From Octopus sinensis (taxonomy: Eukaryota): a stretch of DNA of 64,000 bases. Location of the stretch: positions 22,320,001 to 22,384,000 of the forward strand of contig NC_043005.1 in NCBI RefSeq assembly GCF_006345805.1. The letters are read 5' to 3'. Shown here one piece after another: positions 25,766 through 36,401 of the stretch; within the stretch, counting starts at the first letter, position 1, and every line of letters starts with the position of its first letter. A program made the position numbers and the translations under genes. A model generated the notes under the pieces. It did no database searches and was not told where the DNA came from. It saw nothing but the letters and a program-made list of their open reading frames with translations.

Positions 25766-27205
25766 CTGAAATGTTTGACAGGCAATTTTCTATATATTAA
25801 TTCTAAACTTTACAACGCGCTCGTACACACACACACACACACACACACACACACACACACACACACACACACACACACATTGCGGGGTTATATAAAATAA
25901 GTGTGGGATTCGGAAGTCATTGTTCCAAACTAATCATGTAAGAACAGAAAAGGGAAAGAATGAAACACTTTATAATGCTTCTGCTTGACGTTGCGTTACT
26001 TAGACTGTCAGTAACTCTTTCACGTGATTAGAGAAAAAGAAAGAGAAAAGGAGAGAGAAATAGAGGGAGAGACATGCACCCGTGACGTGAGGCAGAGGAA
26101 ATGTAATTGTAACGCTTTGAGGAGAAAGAAAATGGAGAGAGAAAATGAGGCGAAGAGTGAGACAGAAAGAGGGAGAGAGAAGCATTCATGACGTGAGGTA
26201 GGGGGAACGAAATGTTTATTACGTGATTAAAGAAGTTAGTTGGAGGTAGAGGAGAGTTAAAAATGTAATTTTAGCAGAGGGGTGAAGGTGAAGTTAAAGA
26301 AAGGCAGAGATAGAGAGAGAGAGAGAGAGAGAGAGGAGAGAGAGAGAGAGAGAGAGAGAGAGAGGATGATGGTGGCGGAGATAAAGGTTTTCGTAGTAAT
26401 TGGATAGTAAAAAGTGTATTGTTTTAATTGAACTAAGTTTTTTTATATCACCTATTACTTAATGCATGCGCATAAGTGCAATTCCGCGAAATATTCACGC
26501 TTATTTACATGCCAGACATATGCAATTTAAATAAAGGTTGTATCATATGTACGAGATATATATTTTCATATTTGTTCATGGAAAAAATGGAAAATTAAGA
26601 GTGGATATATATTTTATGAGTACTGAGTATTAGGTCTAGAAAATTGTGCATAAAGCATATAAACTGTATATATATATATATATATATATATATATATATA
26701 TATATATATATATAAAGTACATTAAGTTATCACTTAATTTTCTTTCACTTTTCAATGAGTAGCAGATAAGCGACTATCTTTCCACACTGACATAATACAA
26801 GCTACGCTTTCAGATTTTTGGGATGAAGTTTTCAGAAATAACCTAATAGGTTTACCATTAATTCAGTGAGATATTCACGGGTCCCGCTAGTATTTGTATA
26901 AAGATGATACTCAAATATAGCTGTGTATTCTATATAAGATGTTTGAAAGAAAAGTTTTCCCATATATATATATATATTATATATATATATATATATATTA
27001 TATATATATATATATAATACTAAGCAATAAGGGTTTAGCAACGAGTTGCCTTACCACATACCGAATTTAGAAATAGCAGTCAAAGGGTTATAGCTATTTC
27101 TTCTACAAAAAAGGGAGATCTCAGTAAAAACAGCATTTGGAAGGCAGACACAAACAGGTAAGAGAGAATGAATTGACTGCAATCTATCATACATTTTTTT
27201 AGTTA

Positions 27206-30200
27206 TCCACGGACGTACGTTTCGAAATCAAGTTCTAAGGAAAGCATAAGAATTAGATATTAAATATTAAATAATAAATAATTCTATCTTACCGAAACTT
27301 CTTTTCTCTTCAGCGTAGAATACTATAATCATAAATGATTATATATTGAATTTTGAGATACCAGAAGGCACCAACTCCACTCAGTATCAGAGCGAGCTAG
27401 AATCCGCAACTGGTATCACCGAATTCAATTTGTGAATGAAACGATTGTGTCAACAGCCCCTTCCCACCCGCGTGTAGCCAAAACAAGATGCTGTGGTCAT
27501 CTACTGAGATAAAATATGGTTATCCGTAATAATGAAGGGTGAAATTAATTAATTTGGAAAAATTATCAATTACACCAAGTAGTCTTCGGCATGTAAAAGC
27601 CTCATTCGAGGAAAATTTAAGTAATACTAAGCAATAAGGGTTTAGCAACGAGTTGCCTTACCACATACCGAATTTAGAAATAGCAGTCAAAGGGTTATAG
27701 CTATTTCTTCTACAAAAAAGGGAGATCTCAGTAAAAACAGCATTTGGAAGGCAGACACAAACAGGTAAGAGAGAATGAATTGACTGCAATCTATCATACA
27801 TTTTTTAGTTATCCACGGACGTACGTTTCGAAATCAAGTTCTAAGGAAAGCATAAGAATTAGATATTAAATATTAAATAATAAATAATTCTATCTTACCG
27901 AAACTTCTTTTCTCTTCAGCGTAGAATACTATAATCATAAATGATTATATATTGAATTTTGAGATACCAGAAGGCACCAACTCCACTCAGTATCAGAGCG
28001 AGCTAGAATCCGCAACTGGTATCACCGAATTCAATTTGTGAATGAAACGATTGTGTCAACAGCCCCTTCCCACCCGCGTGTAGCCAAAACAAGATGCTGT
28101 GGTCATCTACTGAGATAAAATATGGTTATCCGTAATAATGAAGGGTGAAATTAATTAATTTGGAAAAATTATCAATTACACCAAGTAGTCTTCGGCATGT
28201 AAAAGCCTCATTCGAGGAAAATTTAAGTAATACTAAGCAATAAGGGTTTAGCAACGAGTTGCCTTACCACATACCGAATTTAGAAATAGCAGTCAAAGGG
28301 TTATAGCTATTTCTTCTACAAAAAAGGGAGATCTCAGTAAAAACAGCATTTGGAAGGCAGACACAAACAGGTAAGAGAGAATGAATTGACTGCAATCTAT
28401 CATACATTTTTTTAGTTATCCACGGACGTACGTTTCGAAATCAAGTTCTAAGGAAAGCATAAGAATTAGATATTAAATATTAAATAATAAATAATTCTAT
28501 CTTACCGAAACTTCTTTTCTCTTCAGCGTAGAATACTATAATCATAAATGATTATATATTGAATTTTGAGATACCAGAAGGCACCAACTCCACTCAGTAT
28601 CAGAGCGAGCTAGAATCCGCAACTGGTATCACCGAATTCAATTTGTGAATGAAACGATTGTGTCAACAGCCCCTTCCCACCCGCGTGTAGCCAAAACAAG
28701 ATGCTGTGGTCATCTACTGAGATAAAATATGGTTATCCGTAATAATGAAGGGTGAAATTAATTAATTTGGAAAAATTATCAATTACACCAAGTAGTCTTC
28801 GGCATGTAAAAGCCTCATTCGAGGAAAATTTAAGTAATACTAAGCAATAAGGGTTTAGCAACGAGTTGCCTTACCACATACCGAATTTAGAAATAGCAGT
28901 CAAAGGGTTATAGCTATTTCTTCTACAAAAAAGGGAGATCTCAGTAAAAACAGCATTTGGAAGGCAGACACAAACAGGTAAGAGAGAATGAATTGACTGC
29001 AATCTATCATACATTTTTTAGTTATCCACGGACGTACGTTTCGAAATCAAGTTCTAAGGAAAGCATAAGAATTAGATATTAAATATTAAATAATAAATAA
29101 TTCTATCTTACCGAAACTTCTTTTCTCTTCAGCGTAGAATACTATAATCATAAATGATTATATATTGAATTTTGAGATACCAGAAGGCACCAACTCCACT
29201 CAGTATCAGAGCGAGCTAGAATCCGCAACTGGTATCACCGAATTCAATTTGTGAATGAAACGATTGTGTCAACAGCCCCTTCCCACCCGCGTGTAGCCAA
29301 AACAAGATGCTGTGGTCATCTACTGAGATAAAATATGGTTATCCGTAATAATGAAGGGTGAAATTAATTAATTTGGAAAAATTATCAATTACACCAAGTA
29401 GTCTTCGGCATGTAAAAGCCTCATTCGAGGAAAATTTAAGTAATACTAAGCAATAAGGGTTTAGCAACGAGTTGCCTTACCACATACCGAATTTAGAAAT
29501 AGCAGTCAAAGGGTTATAGCTATTTCTTCTACAAAAAAGGGAGATCTCAGTAAAAACAGCATTTGGAAGGCAGACACAAACAGGTAAGAGAGAATGAATT
29601 GACTGCAATCTATCATACATTTTTTTAGTTATCCACGGACGTACGTTTCGAAATCAAGTTCTAAGGAAAGCATAAGAATTAGATATTAAATATTAAATAA
29701 TAAATAATTCTATCTTACCGAAACTTCTTTTCTCTTCAGCGTAGAATACTATAATCATAAATGATTATATATTGAATTTTGAGATACCAGAAGGCACCAA
29801 CTCCACTCAGTATCAGAGCGAGCTAGAATCCGCAACTGGTATCACCGAATTCAATTTGTGAATGAAACGATTGTGTCAACAGCCCCTTCCCACCCGCGTG
29901 TAGCCAAAACAAGATGCTGTGGTCATCTACTGAGATAAAATATGGTTATCCGTAATAATGAAGGGTGAAATTAATTAATTTGGAAAAATTATCAATTACA
30001 CCAAGTAGTCTTCGGCATGTAAAAGCCTCATTCGAGGAAAATTTAAGTAATACTAAGCAATAAGGGTTTAGCAACGAGTTGCCTTACCACATACCGAATT
30101 TAGAAATAGCAGTCAAAGGGTTATAGCTATTTCTTCTACAAAAAAGGGAGATCTCAGTAAAAACAGCATTTGGAAGGCAGACACAAACAGGTAAGAGAGA

Positions 30201-30352
30201 ATGAATTGACTGCAATCTATCATACATTTTTTTAGTTATCCACGGACGTACGTTTCGAAATCAAGTTCTAAGGAAAGCATAAGAATTAGATATTAAATAT
30301 TAAATAATAAATAATTCTATCTTACCGAAACTTCTTTTCTCTTCAGCGTAGA
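27206..30352 (-). ncRNA. Six type I hammerhead ribozyme motifs, left arm (114-nt cores starting at 27206, 27812, 28419, 29025, 29632, 30239)
   Basis: Reverse complement of the motif described for the right arm. Predicted cleavage is 3' of minus-strand C at 27212, 27818, 28425, 29031, 29638 and 30245. Confidence 0.85.
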
Positions 30353-30756
30353 ATACTATAATCATAAATGATTATATATTGAATTTTGACTGCTATTTCT
30401 AAATTCGGTATGTGGTAAGGCAACTCGTTGCTAAACCCTTATTGCTTAGTATTACTTAAATTTTCCTCGAATGAGGCTTTTACATGCCGAAGACTACTTG
30501 GTGTAATTGATAATTTTTCCAAATTAATTAATTTCACCCTTCATTATTACGGATAACCATATTTTATCTCAGTAGATGACCACAGCATCTTGTTTTGGCT
30601 ACACGCGGGTGGGAAGGGGCTGTTGACACAATCGTTTCATTCACAAATTGAATTCGGTGATACCAGTTGCGGATTCTAGCTCGCTCTGATACTGAGTGGA
30701 GTTGGTGCCTTCTGGTATCTCAAAATTCAATATATAATCATTTATGATTATAGTAT

Positions 30757-34985: not shown

Positions 34986-35119
34986 TATATATACATATAT
35001 ACATACATACACACACACACACACACACACACATATATATATATATATATATATATATAAATATATATATATATATATATATATATATATATATATATAT
35101 ATATATATATATATATATA

Positions 35120-35646
35120 TACTACTAATATAGGATGAAGTGTTTTTACAGAAAAAAATTCCATAAAAAAAATGTGGCAGCATATTAAAATACCTTTACC
35201 GTTAAAATTATAAACAACTTATAAATAAGAGCTAAAGAAAATTATTTTAATGCCAATATGCTGATAACAGACTTTTAAATCCTCAATTTCCACATATTAT
35301 TTACTCGCAACAGAAACAAACACGAACTGAAATCGGGGAAAGCTCGCCGATAGATTAAGATATTTACATGCGCCCATGGAAAAAAGCCGAAGCAAAAATC
35401 ATGAGTACATACAAGTACCCTAGATATATCTAAAAATAAAATTATTTGGCCAGCCCCAGCACAACGTGTTGACTGTTCTCCACTACAGGTTATAGTGGTT
35501 ACCAGTCCCTATAGCGAGTAGTAATATGTCTACTACTAATATAGGATGAAGTTTTTCTACAGAAAAAAAAATTCCATCAAAAAATGTGGCAGCATATTAA
35601 AATACCTTTACGGTTAAAATTACAACTTACAAATAAGGGCTAAAGG
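35120..35646 (+). repeat. (TA)n-adjacent element with a ~115-bp direct repeat, related to 20121-20220
   Basis: TACTACTAATATAGGATGAAG...GCTAAAG occurs at 35120-35237 and again at 35531-35646. Confidence 0.7.
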
Positions 35647-36401
35647 TCCGAAAACATACAACAGAATAGACTCCGCTTAAGGCATCTAATGTGCCTGCCA
35701 AGTAGTGGTGTTAAACGGGCTGACGGATTAAGTCTACCACTCAAGTAGACCAAGATGGAGTTTGAATTTAGAACATCAAGAGTTGGGAAAAATACCACAA
35801 CGCTCTGATTCATATTTGCTGGTCTAATACTTTTAACTAGTACTTTATTTTTATTGGTCCCGGAAAGACGAAATTTAAAGTTGACCCCGGCGGGATTTGA
35901 ACTCAGAATGCACTGCAAGGCATTTCGTTTGCAAAGTTCTAACAATCTTGGCAATTCATCGCTTTGGACATTAGTAAGTAGTTTTAGCAGTTTTATTGTG
36001 GTGGTGTGCCAGATTAAATATTTTGCAGCATTAAGTTTCATTTCTTTATGCTCAATATTGGTCAAGGTCAGGTTTGCCTTTCGTCTGTGCAGATTTTATA
36101 AAACACCACAGACCAAAGACTGTATTATCCTTCTTCCAAAAATGTTAAGCAGTGTACCAAAACTCTTATTAATAGCGCATCCGAGACACCGAAGCTAGGT
36201 TCTTTGGTGACGTAATTTTTTTACCTTATTCTTCTGATTTAATAACAGGTCTTCCTTTAAGTCATAATGGAAAAATATAATTAAATTTTAACTTTAGAAT
36301 ACGAAACATATATTGCAAGTGAGAGGTGTTAAATGTCACAGTAGAACAATTTCATAAACAATTTCATACAGTGTGTAGAAAGTTAATATAAATGTATTTA
36401 C

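Follow-up and report, generated by a model that had tools for sequence, protein, structure and literature searches.

The 64,000-nucleotide stretch of DNA analysed here (the window) carries a 7.2-kb repeat block (27015-34199) inside intron 4 of an octopus protease gene, which raises the question of how such a block came to lie there and what becomes of it when the gene is transcribed. The host gene was modelled by tblastn with O. sinensis P0001 and splice-aware reconstruction. It is cathepsin L1-like (preprocathepsin L) and occupies 20778-44868 on the minus strand, the strand given in a first-pass annotation of this DNA. Its seven coding exons (exons 1-4 at 44868-44732, 41458-41353, 40218-40075 and 36525-36402; exons 5-7 at 25765-25668, 22469-22204 and 20877-20778, with the stop in the last) form an intact ORF of 324 aa, and the predicted protein is identical to P0001 (O. 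sinensis "cathepsin L1-like isoform X1") at 306 of 324 residues (94%) and matches Pfam Peptidase_C1 (E=6.5e-82). This gene model and the GT...AG ends of intron 4 (25766-36401, minus strand) bear out the annotated location of the array within an intron of a cathepsin L-type gene. Intron 4 is 10,636 nt long compared with 3,939 nt for the orthologous O. sinensis intron, and the inserted array makes up 68% of it.

The block consists of two tandem arrays of a single 607-nt monomer, placed head to head and amounting to approximately 12 repeats across both arms. The left arm (27015-30389, 5.56 monomers) has its monomer sense on the minus strand, that is, sense to the gene, and runs from the junction outward from monomer position 463 to 197. 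In the right arm (30385-34199, 6.3 monomers), the plus strand carries the monomer in sense orientation, so the pre-mRNA contains it as antisense; read from the junction, its monomer positions go from 128 to 300. The inner junction lacks a true spacer, the arms abutting with a 5-nt overlap, the microhomology TTTGA present in both (30385-30389). All 10 full monomers are identical except for an A7 to A6 homopolymer difference in two left-arm monomers, an identity that could stem in part from consensus polishing by the assembler. The reference monomer, taken from cleavage site to cleavage site (30865-31471, plus strand), has a GC content of 35% and is non-coding (longest stop-free run, 58 codons), with predicted folding energies of -166 kcal/mol (z=-5.9) for the sense RNA and -133 kcal/mol (z=-2.9) for the antisense RNA. 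Searches of the remainder of the window, of 38 kb of O. sinensis, of a protein collection and of metagenomes turned up no further copy of the monomer, not even a diverged one.

Each arm contains six complete type-I hammerhead motifs, one per monomer, according to a structural descriptor with 12 hits in the array and none in 8 Mb of null sequence matched for composition. Left-arm motifs lie on the minus strand at 30239-30352 (114 nt), 29632-29745, 29025-29138, 28419-28532, 27812-27925 and 27206-27319, with predicted cleavage after C17 at 30245, 29638, 29031, 28425, 27818 and 27212. As the monomer is sense on that strand, these six are sense in the pre-mRNA, as had been proposed. Right-arm motifs lie on the plus strand at 30757-30870, 31364-31477, 31971-32084, 32578-32691, 33185-33298 and 33792-33905. 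The layout reads UCUACG / CUGAAGA / helix II of ~83 nt / GAAAC-GUAC-GUC, predicted cut, CGUGGA, and the core is complete (CUGAAGA, G10.1-C11.1, GAAA, A15.1-U16.1 and C17). Helix I has 6 bp, helix II has 4 bp followed by an internal loop, and helix III has 2 bp with a palindromic GUAC loop, an architecture equal to that of the published canonical metazoan type-I hammerhead (PMC4209133). Unusually, helix II is lengthened by 79 nt. This extension explains why the motif scores below the Rfam threshold: larger stretches gave no Rfam match at gathering score or at E<=10, and on a 161-nt stretch RF00163 aligned over its full length (1-45/45) to the right-arm motif at 30757-30870 with 16.9 bits versus a gathering score of 34. 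Helices I and II are kept, and the core is unpaired, in the minimum-free-energy folds of both a 160-nt stretch and the whole monomer. The helix III region, ACGUACGU, is self-complementary and its GUAC loop palindromic, so cutting is predicted to occur through dimers within multimeric sense transcripts. Co-folding of a dimer gives -61.2 kcal/mol, compared with 2 x -24.4, and joins the two copies through an 8-bp intermolecular helix III. In published work, hammerheads whose helix III is short require two copies, and single units cut slowly (PMC4209133, PMC7229834).

Comparison with O. sinensis points to a recent arrival of the block. The orthologous intron in that species lacks it and represents the empty site, with flanks that are 97.9% and 92.6% identical to those here and join inside an (AT)n tract. 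Here, the (TA)n microsatellite is split into a left half of 53 nt (26962-27014) and a right half of 45 nt (34200-34244), which sum to 98 nt versus ~92 nt for the uninterrupted O. sinensis tract, so that total length was kept; no target-site duplication is readable within this (TA)n target. The microsatellite is flanked by a short palindrome made up of AAAGTTTTCCC (26951-26961, plus strand) and its partner (34245-34255, minus strand), which was rejected as a transposon terminal repeat since it is native and also found at the O. sinensis empty site. By these sequence comparisons, the block appears to be a lineage-specific insertion of mobile-element type, a point that the first-pass annotation had overlooked. 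We consider it likely that it represents a very recent insertion of a non-autonomous, hammerhead-bearing tandem retroelement (non-LTR retrozyme) into the (AT)n tract of intron 4.

Non-LTR retrozymes are thought to depend on Penelope-like elements. As in other members of the family, ribozyme cutting of multimers would free monomers of 607 nt bearing 5'-OH and 2',3'-cyclic phosphate termini, which the tRNA ligase RtcB could circularise, and the circle or multimer would then template reverse transcription. Because both arms sit on the split (TA)n with their 3' ends facing outward, join by their 5' ends at the TTTGA microhomology, and are built of identical monomers, we infer a single twin-primed, target-primed event, which would have run ~5.6 and 6.3 times round a single circular (or multimeric) RNA. 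Twin-primed reverse transcription of circular or multimeric RNA probably produced the anatomy observed here. The same anatomy is unlikely to have originated at the DNA level, through amplification of a satellite by unequal exchange or slippage and later inversion of part of it by fold-back or template switch at TTTGA. Such a course would need at least two more junctions to set opposite-facing arm ends on one length-conserved microsatellite, it would leave the arrival of the first monomer to explain (the block being absent in O. sinensis), and its stepwise amplification should have left monomer variation, of which none was seen. Nonetheless, microhomology at inversion junctions is also typical of replication template switching, and (TA)n palindromes, of which the empty site is one, are fragile and form cruciforms.

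A multi-kilobase perfect hairpin between the two arms is possible in the pre-mRNA (3.1-3.4 kb, 0 mismatches), as the first-pass annotation had recognised. It had paired 27015-30117 with 30385-33487; the former segment does pair, but its actual partner is 30385-33489 (3103 matched positions, no mismatch and two bulges of 1 nt). In a better register, the whole left arm (27015-30389) pairs with 30720-34096 over 3375 bp with 0 mismatches and a 330-nt loop, and the loop of ~267 nt that had been described holds for one register only. The sense:antisense duplex is predicted at -1098 kcal/mol per monomer versus -299 for the separate folds, a gain of ~800 kcal/mol, and minus-strand transcription makes the antisense (right) arm first and the sense (left) arm second. 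The annotation had offered ribozyme processing and hairpin formation as alternative outcomes, and the arms and hammerhead motifs for both are present; however, the two are not equally likely, since the duplex is favoured and the antisense arm comes first. Together with the need for two copies in cutting, these energies and this order lead us to expect that the hairpin should out-compete ribozyme folding in host-gene transcripts. The nascent sense arm would zip onto the earlier antisense arm to give a perfect ~3.4-kb hairpin that buries the six sense hammerheads, so ribozyme cutting of host transcripts is expected to be minor.

It is accordingly doubtful that, driven by the host promoter, the six sense hammerheads cut the pre-mRNA co-transcriptionally, which would release 607-nt monomers or circles, sever the intron and lower cathepsin L output. 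In favour of this reading, an intact gene that is presumably expressed carries six complete motifs in sense orientation, RNAs from this class of retrozymes undergo processing and circularisation in other animals (PMC7229834), and the depletion of retrozymes from Xenopus introns suggests a cost of genic insertions (10.64898/2026.07.22.740005). However, transcription reaches the complementary arm first, the sense arm begins only ~330 nt away from it, the duplex greatly exceeds the local folds in stability, and the two copies that short-helix III hammerheads need (PMC4209133, PMC7229834) are here 607 nt apart. Nor is any gene decay seen, although the insertion is too young for this to carry much weight. 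Under the hairpin reading, the insertion would be tolerated as looped-out intronic dsRNA and would be a typical candidate for ADAR hyper-editing. ADAR editing is a general expectation for intronic inverted repeats in octopus (PMC5625713), and by this analogy ADAR or Dicer targeting, as well as effects on protease expression or splicing, may be expected. Only transcription initiated within the array and directed outward would yield cleavable multimers of purely sense polarity.

That the hammerhead is instead a defunct relic and the repeat a non-functional satellite seems quite improbable, although the 79-nt insertion replaces loop 2 and makes the usual loop1-loop2 tertiary contact impossible in its canonical form, the Rfam score falls short of the threshold, and many minimal Penelope-type hammerheads cut poorly in vitro (PMC4209133). 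None of the 12 copies has lost an invariant core position, G10.1-C11.1 or the palindromic helix III, and the internal loops, 6 bp into helix I and 4 bp into helix II, coincide with the places of the interacting loops in canonical motifs. In addition, the sense strand shows markedly more structure than the antisense strand, and the array's recent amplification implies that its life cycle works. An assembly artefact, such as a long read made chimeric by fold-back or a repeat that was collapsed or expanded, is very unlikely to account for the palindrome or for the number of copies: perfect palindromes are a recognised class of such artefacts, copies and arms are 100% identical, and homopolymer-length differences are typical long-read errors, but both outer junctions are anchored in unique flanks colinear with O. 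sinensis, the monomers at these two junctions face opposite ways so that an inversion point must lie between them, a simple fold-back would run into the reverse complement of the left flank rather than the true right flank, and the two arms match neither in length nor in phase. The monomer number and the exact inner junction are the only features that still depend on the assembly.

As a retrozyme insertion, the block would add a fresh case to an established class, the animal "retrozymes", and would not constitute a new type of system. Metazoan non-LTR retrozymes are tandem repeats with type-I hammerheads whose transcripts occur as circRNAs (Cervera & de la Pena 2020, PMC7229834; preprint of Li et al. 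2026, 10.64898/2026.07.22.740005), with monomers of 51-972 bp and, in most families, 7 or fewer units (10.64898/2026.07.22.740005; PMC7229834). The octopus arrays likewise have head-to-tail monomers of one polarity with one type-I hammerhead each, their monomer is non-coding and low in GC with a highly self-paired sense RNA, 607 nt and ~6 units per array fall inside the reported ranges, and the helix III design implies dimer-dependent cutting. They differ in the extended helix II and in forming a head-to-head perfect palindrome, an arrangement not described in these retrozyme studies (PMC7229834; 10.64898/2026.07.22.740005). Moreover, the block is intronic, whereas retrozymes are depleted from Xenopus introns (10.64898/2026.07.22.740005), and it is known here from the sequence of one locus, whereas retrozymes are known as expressed circRNAs. 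We found no reports of retrozymes from cephalopods in the literature.

Penelope-like elements, families of which occur in O. vulgaris (PMC13282606), show tandem and inverted insertions, with 5'-truncated inverted copies that give inverted repeats, and use (TA)n targets that hide target-site duplications (PMC8557442), all of which resembles the octopus block. Hammerheads of Penelope pseudo-LTRs are also type-I with a short palindromic helix III (PMC4209133), although the octopus motif, with 6 bp in helix I and 4 bp in helix II before the internal loop, follows the "canonical" metazoan design and not the minimal Penelope variant. Unlike these elements, neither the monomer nor the window contains a Penelope-like ORF (RT/GIY-YIG), the retroelement ORFs of the window being LINE-type. 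The amniote intronic hammerheads HH9/HH10, as summarised in PMC7229834 (de la Pena & Garcia-Robles 2010), share the type-I motif placed sense in an intron of a protein-coding gene; as described there they are single, ancient and conserved, whereas the octopus array is multi-copy, species-level and without conservation (absent in O. sinensis). As with inverted Alu pairs edited by ADAR, inverted copies in one pre-mRNA can form long dsRNA with nearly perfect pairing (octopus hyper-editing, PMC5625713). Unlike such pairs, the octopus stem is unusual in its length and perfection, spanning 3.4 kb with 0 mismatches, and would consist of ribozyme units from one insertion event. Twin-primed (5'-inverted) LINE-1 insertions, reportedly described by Ostertag and Kazazian in 2001, offer a parallel in their opposite cDNA segments, with RNA-3' ends at the outer target junctions and 5' ends joined at microhomology. 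In the octopus, however, there is no poly(A), the template would have been a ribozyme RNA, circular or multimeric, round which copying went many times, and the enzyme was presumably a Penelope-type RT/endonuclease rather than L1 ORF2p.

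Gene A, the cathepsin L1-like gene that hosts the array, is encoded on the minus strand by seven exons (44868-44732, 41458-41353, 40218-40075, 36525-36402, 25765-25668, 22469-22204 and 20877-20778, from exon 1 to exon 7), which are joined by canonical GT...AG splicing to give an intact 324-aa preprocathepsin. The mature domain covers the whole Pfam Peptidase_C1 profile (E=6.5e-82), and the best named relative of the protein is the Octopus sinensis "cathepsin L1-like isoform X1", with 306/324 residues identical along the full length and 93% identity within the domain. The window thus comes from an octopus closely related to, yet distinct from, O. 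sinensis. Spliced exon boundaries place intron 4 at 25766-36401, exactly where the first-pass annotation had put it, and the array accounts for 68% of its length. Outside the array, the intron carries a direct duplication (35113-35224 and 35524-35636, ~411 nt spacing, 82-91% identity), and the corresponding O. sinensis region has the same internal duplication as window 35113-35636. An annotated O. sinensis isoform X2 (P0002, 276 aa) is without exactly the exon 3 segment (window 40218-40075), which encodes the propeptide end and the N-terminus of the mature enzyme. Hence, exon 3 skipping is annotated for the O. sinensis orthologue. A second cathepsin L paralogue, most similar to O. sinensis "cathepsin L1" (P0004), has exons at 56506-59021 on the minus strand, upstream of gene A, and in O. 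sinensis a further Peptidase_C1 gene lies downstream of the gene A orthologue (positions 34761-38319 of the orthologous locus, L001). The locus is therefore a tandem cathepsin L gene cluster.

The block within intron 4 (27015-34199) consists of two oppositely oriented tandem arrays, both of the same 607-nt monomer, as delimited by repeat finding, blastn and motif positions. The left arm (27015-30389) holds 5.6 units with the monomer sense on the minus strand, and the right arm (30385-34199) holds 6.3 units with the monomer sense on the plus strand. Tandem Repeats Finder reported no array in the window, as it accepts periods of up to 500 nt, shorter than the 607 nt here. The ten full monomers are identical except that two left-arm units have a homopolymer of A6 in place of A7, the period being 606 or 607 nt as a result. 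The arms adjoin directly, with 5 nt in common (TTTGA, 30385-30389) and no unique spacer. The first-pass annotation had correctly recognized 27015-30117 as complementary to the other arm, although the end that it gave for the partner was off by 2 nt: the true partner is 30385-33489, and the two pair with no mismatches and two 1-nt bulges. Similarly, its loop of ~267 nt holds in one pairing register but is not a true spacer, since the arms abut. Pairing is more extensive in another register, in which all of the left arm (27015-30389) is matched by 30720-34096 to form 3,375 bp with a 330-nt loop.

Every monomer carries the same junction layout, UCUACG-CUGAAGA-(G...83 nt...C)-GAAAC-GUAC-GUC, then the cleavage site, then CGUGGA. 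The invariant hammerhead core (C3-U4-G5-A6-N7-G8-A9, G12-A13-A14, the A15.1-U16.1 pair and H17, the nucleotide at the cleavage site) is complete in 12/12 copies and aligns without mismatch to the core of the type-I hammerhead model RF00163. A structural descriptor and unconstrained MFE folds agree on three helices, of which helix I is the open one, and on closure by a G10.1-C11.1 pair. Helix I has 6 bp (UCUACG/CGUGGA) followed by an internal loop; helix II has 4 bp (G-C plus 3 bp), with loop 2 replaced by a 2x2 internal loop running into a long AU-rich hairpin of ~70 nt; and helix III has 2 bp capped by the palindromic tetraloop GUAC. The unconstrained fold of a 160-nt stretch reproduced the three-way junction with the core unpaired, as did the fold of the whole monomer, and the modelled geometry could plausibly accommodate a tertiary contact between loop 1 and loop 2. 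These dimensions, counting helix II up to its internal loop, agree with the canonical metazoan type-I hammerhead, which has a 6-bp helix I, a 4-bp helix II, a 1-2-bp helix III and a 2-4-nt palindromic helix III loop, and is active as a dimer in tandem repeats (PMC4209133). The segment ACGUACGU is self-complementary, and co-folding two copies gave an 8-bp intermolecular helix III (-61.2 versus 2 x -24.4, i.e., -48.8 kcal/mol).

To score a hit, the descriptor needs a helix I of 5 bp or more, a helix II of 4 bp or more and a hairpin at helix III, together with the core and H17. It matched the 12 array motifs, on one polarity of the monomer only, and nothing in 8 Mb of first-order Markov sequence with composition matched to the window or to the monomer; a chance hammerhead is ruled out by this null (95% upper bound ~5e-4 per monomer). 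The six left-arm copies are sense in the gene A pre-mRNA, as initially annotated, the left arm being sense on the minus strand like gene A itself. Rfam gave no hammerhead match across the whole window at gathering scores, and no match in the 8-kb array at E<=10. With the laxest filters applied to a 161-nt stretch, RF00163 aligned end to end (1-45/45) at 30757-30870 with all core positions matching, at a score of 16.9 bits (E=0.12) compared with the gathering threshold of 34 bits. The low score arises because the helix II loop carries a 79-nt insertion, versus 10 nt in the model. The consensus helix III of RF00163, GAAACGcgCGUC, mirrors GAAACGUACGUC of the array motif. All 12 copies are identical, and no diverged homologue that could inform on covariation of the helices occurred in the sequences searched. 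By most of the tested criteria, the array motif reads as a canonical metazoan type-I hammerhead, failing only the Rfam score threshold.

Tandem organization, low GC content, highly self-paired RNA and a type-I hammerhead are hallmarks of animal non-LTR retrozymes (PMC7229834). The monomer is non-coding (longest stop-free run of 58 codons, counting both strands of the circularised unit) and has a GC content of 35%. For the cleaved sense monomer, the folding energy is -166.2 kcal/mol (z=-5.86 versus dinucleotide shuffles), and for the antisense monomer -133.2 kcal/mol (z=-2.93), an asymmetry that, in these models, favours the ribozyme-bearing strand. With head-to-tail non-coding monomers, one type-I hammerhead in each, GC below 45% and highly self-paired monomer RNA, the block has the structure that defines a non-LTR retrozyme array. 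A concatenated stop-free-ORF query against a 5.8-billion-protein collection, including sequencing-run assemblies, returned no diverged family member, and two exact-pattern scans of metagenome contigs returned no diverged copy. The literature searched held no report of a hammerhead or retrozyme for octopus or cephalopods, beyond mention of Penelope-like families.

Comparison with the O. sinensis orthologous locus L001 (CM016867.1) provides an empty site for the block. L001 has the same seven exons, and its intron 4 measures 3,939 nt versus 10,636 nt in the window. Searches by blastn and nhmmer found no match to the monomer across the 38 kb of L001 and no further copy in the 57 kb of the window outside the block. 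Window 34914-34200 aligns with L001 21094-21806 (97.9% identity) and window 27016-25767 with L001 21797-23089 (92.6% identity), and the two flank alignments join within an (AT)n tract. In L001, the empty site, the tract lies at the centre of a small native palindrome, AAAGTTTTCCC-(AT)~46-GGGAAAACTTT (L001 21751-21870), and the block splits the same palindrome in the window (26951-27014 and 34200-34255), with TA halves that together amount to 98 nt versus ~92 nt in O. sinensis. The native palindrome could form a cruciform, and the 220 nt adjacent to it recur in inverted orientation elsewhere in the O. sinensis intron, at 87% (L001 20901-21116 versus 21590-21806). Presence in the window versus absence from L001 amounts to at least one insertion event. 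There are zero substitutions among 7.2 kb of monomers, whereas the flanks differ by 2-7% between species, which would make the event much younger than the split between the species. On the assembled sequence, the block is a recent insertion, with a dating that could be weakened by repeat homogenisation or assembler polishing.

The arrangement of the two arms bears on how the block integrated. Outward from the inner junction, the left arm runs in the sense direction from monomer position 463 to 197, and the right arm from 128 to 300. Both RNA-3' ends abut the split (TA)n halves at AU-rich monomer patches (ending in UAGUAUUA and in CGGAUAAC), and both 5' ends join at the TTTGA microhomology. This layout would be the signature of twin-primed, target-primed reverse transcription, with the two cDNAs making ~5.6 and ~6.3 rounds of one circular or multimeric template; repeated passage of each cDNA round one template is the proposed reason for the identity of the monomers. 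Integration probably took place in this way. Twin-primed reverse transcription is familiar from 5'-inverted L1 insertions.

A DNA-level origin, in which satellite amplification was combined with a fold-back template switch, is possible, but this route requires more junctions and leaves the arrival of the first copy unexplained. An assembly artefact in the form of a simple fold-back chimera is unlikely. Perfect identity with homopolymer-only differences is suspicious in this respect; nonetheless, the outer junctions both lie against unique flanking sequence that is colinear with O. sinensis, and the monomer orientation is opposite at the two, so an inversion point must lie between them. In a simple fold-back chimera, the sequence would instead go on as the left flank in reverse complement. 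For the array, the copy number and exact inner junction are those read from the assembly. A foldback or TIR DNA transposon was rejected, as the shared inverted AAAGTTTTCCC-(TA)n is already at the O. sinensis empty site, such that the inverted AAAGTTTTCCC flanks are not a transposon terminal repeat, and no direct duplication surrounds the block.

The main value of the locus is as a clean filled-site/empty-site record of retrozyme integration. The movement of retrozymes in animals has so far been inferred mostly from co-occurrence with Penelope-like elements, and a filled and an empty site in sister species offer a concrete structural record of the integration step. Four features are informative here: the identical monomers, the arms with 3' ends outward, the inner-junction microhomology and the split (TA)n target. 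The locus would also extend hammerhead-bearing tandem elements to cephalopods. Rfam screening at standard settings misses this functional-looking type-I hammerhead owing to its long helix II extension, and such elements may be under-counted.

The order of the arms also shapes the predicted fate of the array in the host transcript. As gene A is read from 36401 down to 25766, the antisense right arm comes first and the left arm, with its six sense hammerheads, after, and the emerging sense arm has its perfect complement ~330 nt upstream. The sense:antisense duplex has a computed energy of -1098 kcal/mol per monomer, versus -299 kcal/mol for the strands folded alone. A hammerhead with this design needs a second copy and cuts slowly on its own (PMC4209133, PMC7229834), and the second copy for an array hammerhead is 607 nt away. 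Given the antisense-first order, the duplex stability and the need for a dimer, a 3.4-kb hairpin is expected to prevail in the host transcript, with all six sense ribozymes hidden in the duplex. A read-through transcript of the other strand would have the same hairpin outcome, and pure sense multimers would come only from initiation within the array running outward. Cleavage within an intron need not abolish splicing, as is known from exon tethering and ribozyme-in-intron experiments. In the gene A pre-mRNA, the right (antisense) arm presents six AAUAAA and twelve AUUAAA hexamers, one set per monomer (30803-33838), and the sense monomer is without AAUAAA; the antisense-arm hexamers could serve as intronic polyadenylation signals.

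Long, near-perfect dsRNA formed by inverted repeats in one pre-mRNA is the main substrate for ADAR hyper-editing across animals, and octopus is among the highest for hyper-editing (PMC5625713). ADAR editing of the hairpin is a reasonable, if generic, suggestion, and for gene A it makes a modest practical point: hyper-editing would have a strong candidate substrate in the perfect 7-kb palindrome of the intron. We regard as improbable the further proposal that the head-to-head layout constitutes a self-silencing module and that the locus is also the first natural record of twin-primed rolling-circle retrozyme integration at (TA)n. If self-silencing were true, read-through on either strand would meet the antisense arm first and yield a perfect 3.4-kb dsRNA, to be hyper-edited or diced; the small RNAs so produced would keep the retrozyme family repressed in trans and might also tune the host cathepsin L gene; and cleavable sense multimers would be produced only by outward transcription starting inside the array.

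A second, compact hammerhead-like motif occurs at 20421-20481 on the plus strand (within window 20177-20643), ~300 nt downstream of the gene A stop codon and antisense to gene A. Its parts are CUGACGA at 20427, helix II AGAG/CUCU, GAAA at 20460, helix III AUCG/CGAU, an A as H17 at 20475, and a 6-bp helix I. The motif was matched by the descriptor, whose null rate is 0 in 8 Mb, and was not reported by Rfam at E<=10. It is enclosed by the two halves of an inverted repeat (181 nt, 88%) and adjoins a further (TA)n tract (20042-20126). The surrounding element is common to O. sinensis (96.5% identity), with the motif kept bar one loop base, and may be an older Penelope- or retrozyme-type element.

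Among known systems, Penelope-like elements are found as tandem plus inverted 5'-truncated copies with a (TA)n target preference (PMC8557442). The block shares this insertion architecture, being tandem and inverted with 5' truncation at a (TA)n target, with no readable target-site duplication. It differs from an autonomous Penelope-like element, which carries an ORF for a reverse transcriptase and a GIY-YIG endonuclease; the monomer has no ORF, and this identity is ruled out. The O. vulgaris genome is annotated with Penelope families (PMC13282606). No Penelope-like ORF was found in the window, where the reverse transcriptase ORFs are LINE-type with an Exo_endo_phos endonuclease. These include near-identical copies (Exo_endo_phos plus RVT_1) at 3-1811 and 59345-61793, both on the plus strand, and fragments at 4741-6526 (RVT_1, zf-RVT), 9093-10388 (Exo_endo_phos) and 38527-39195 (RVT_1), the last in gene A intron 3 and antisense. 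Retrozyme monomers span 51-972 bp, and three quarters of families have <=7 units (10.64898/2026.07.22.740005); the array resembles non-LTR retrozymes in that its 607-nt period and its 5.6 and 6.3 units per arm are within these published ranges. It is unusual in its palindromic double array, its long helix II, its intronic site and its cephalopod host.
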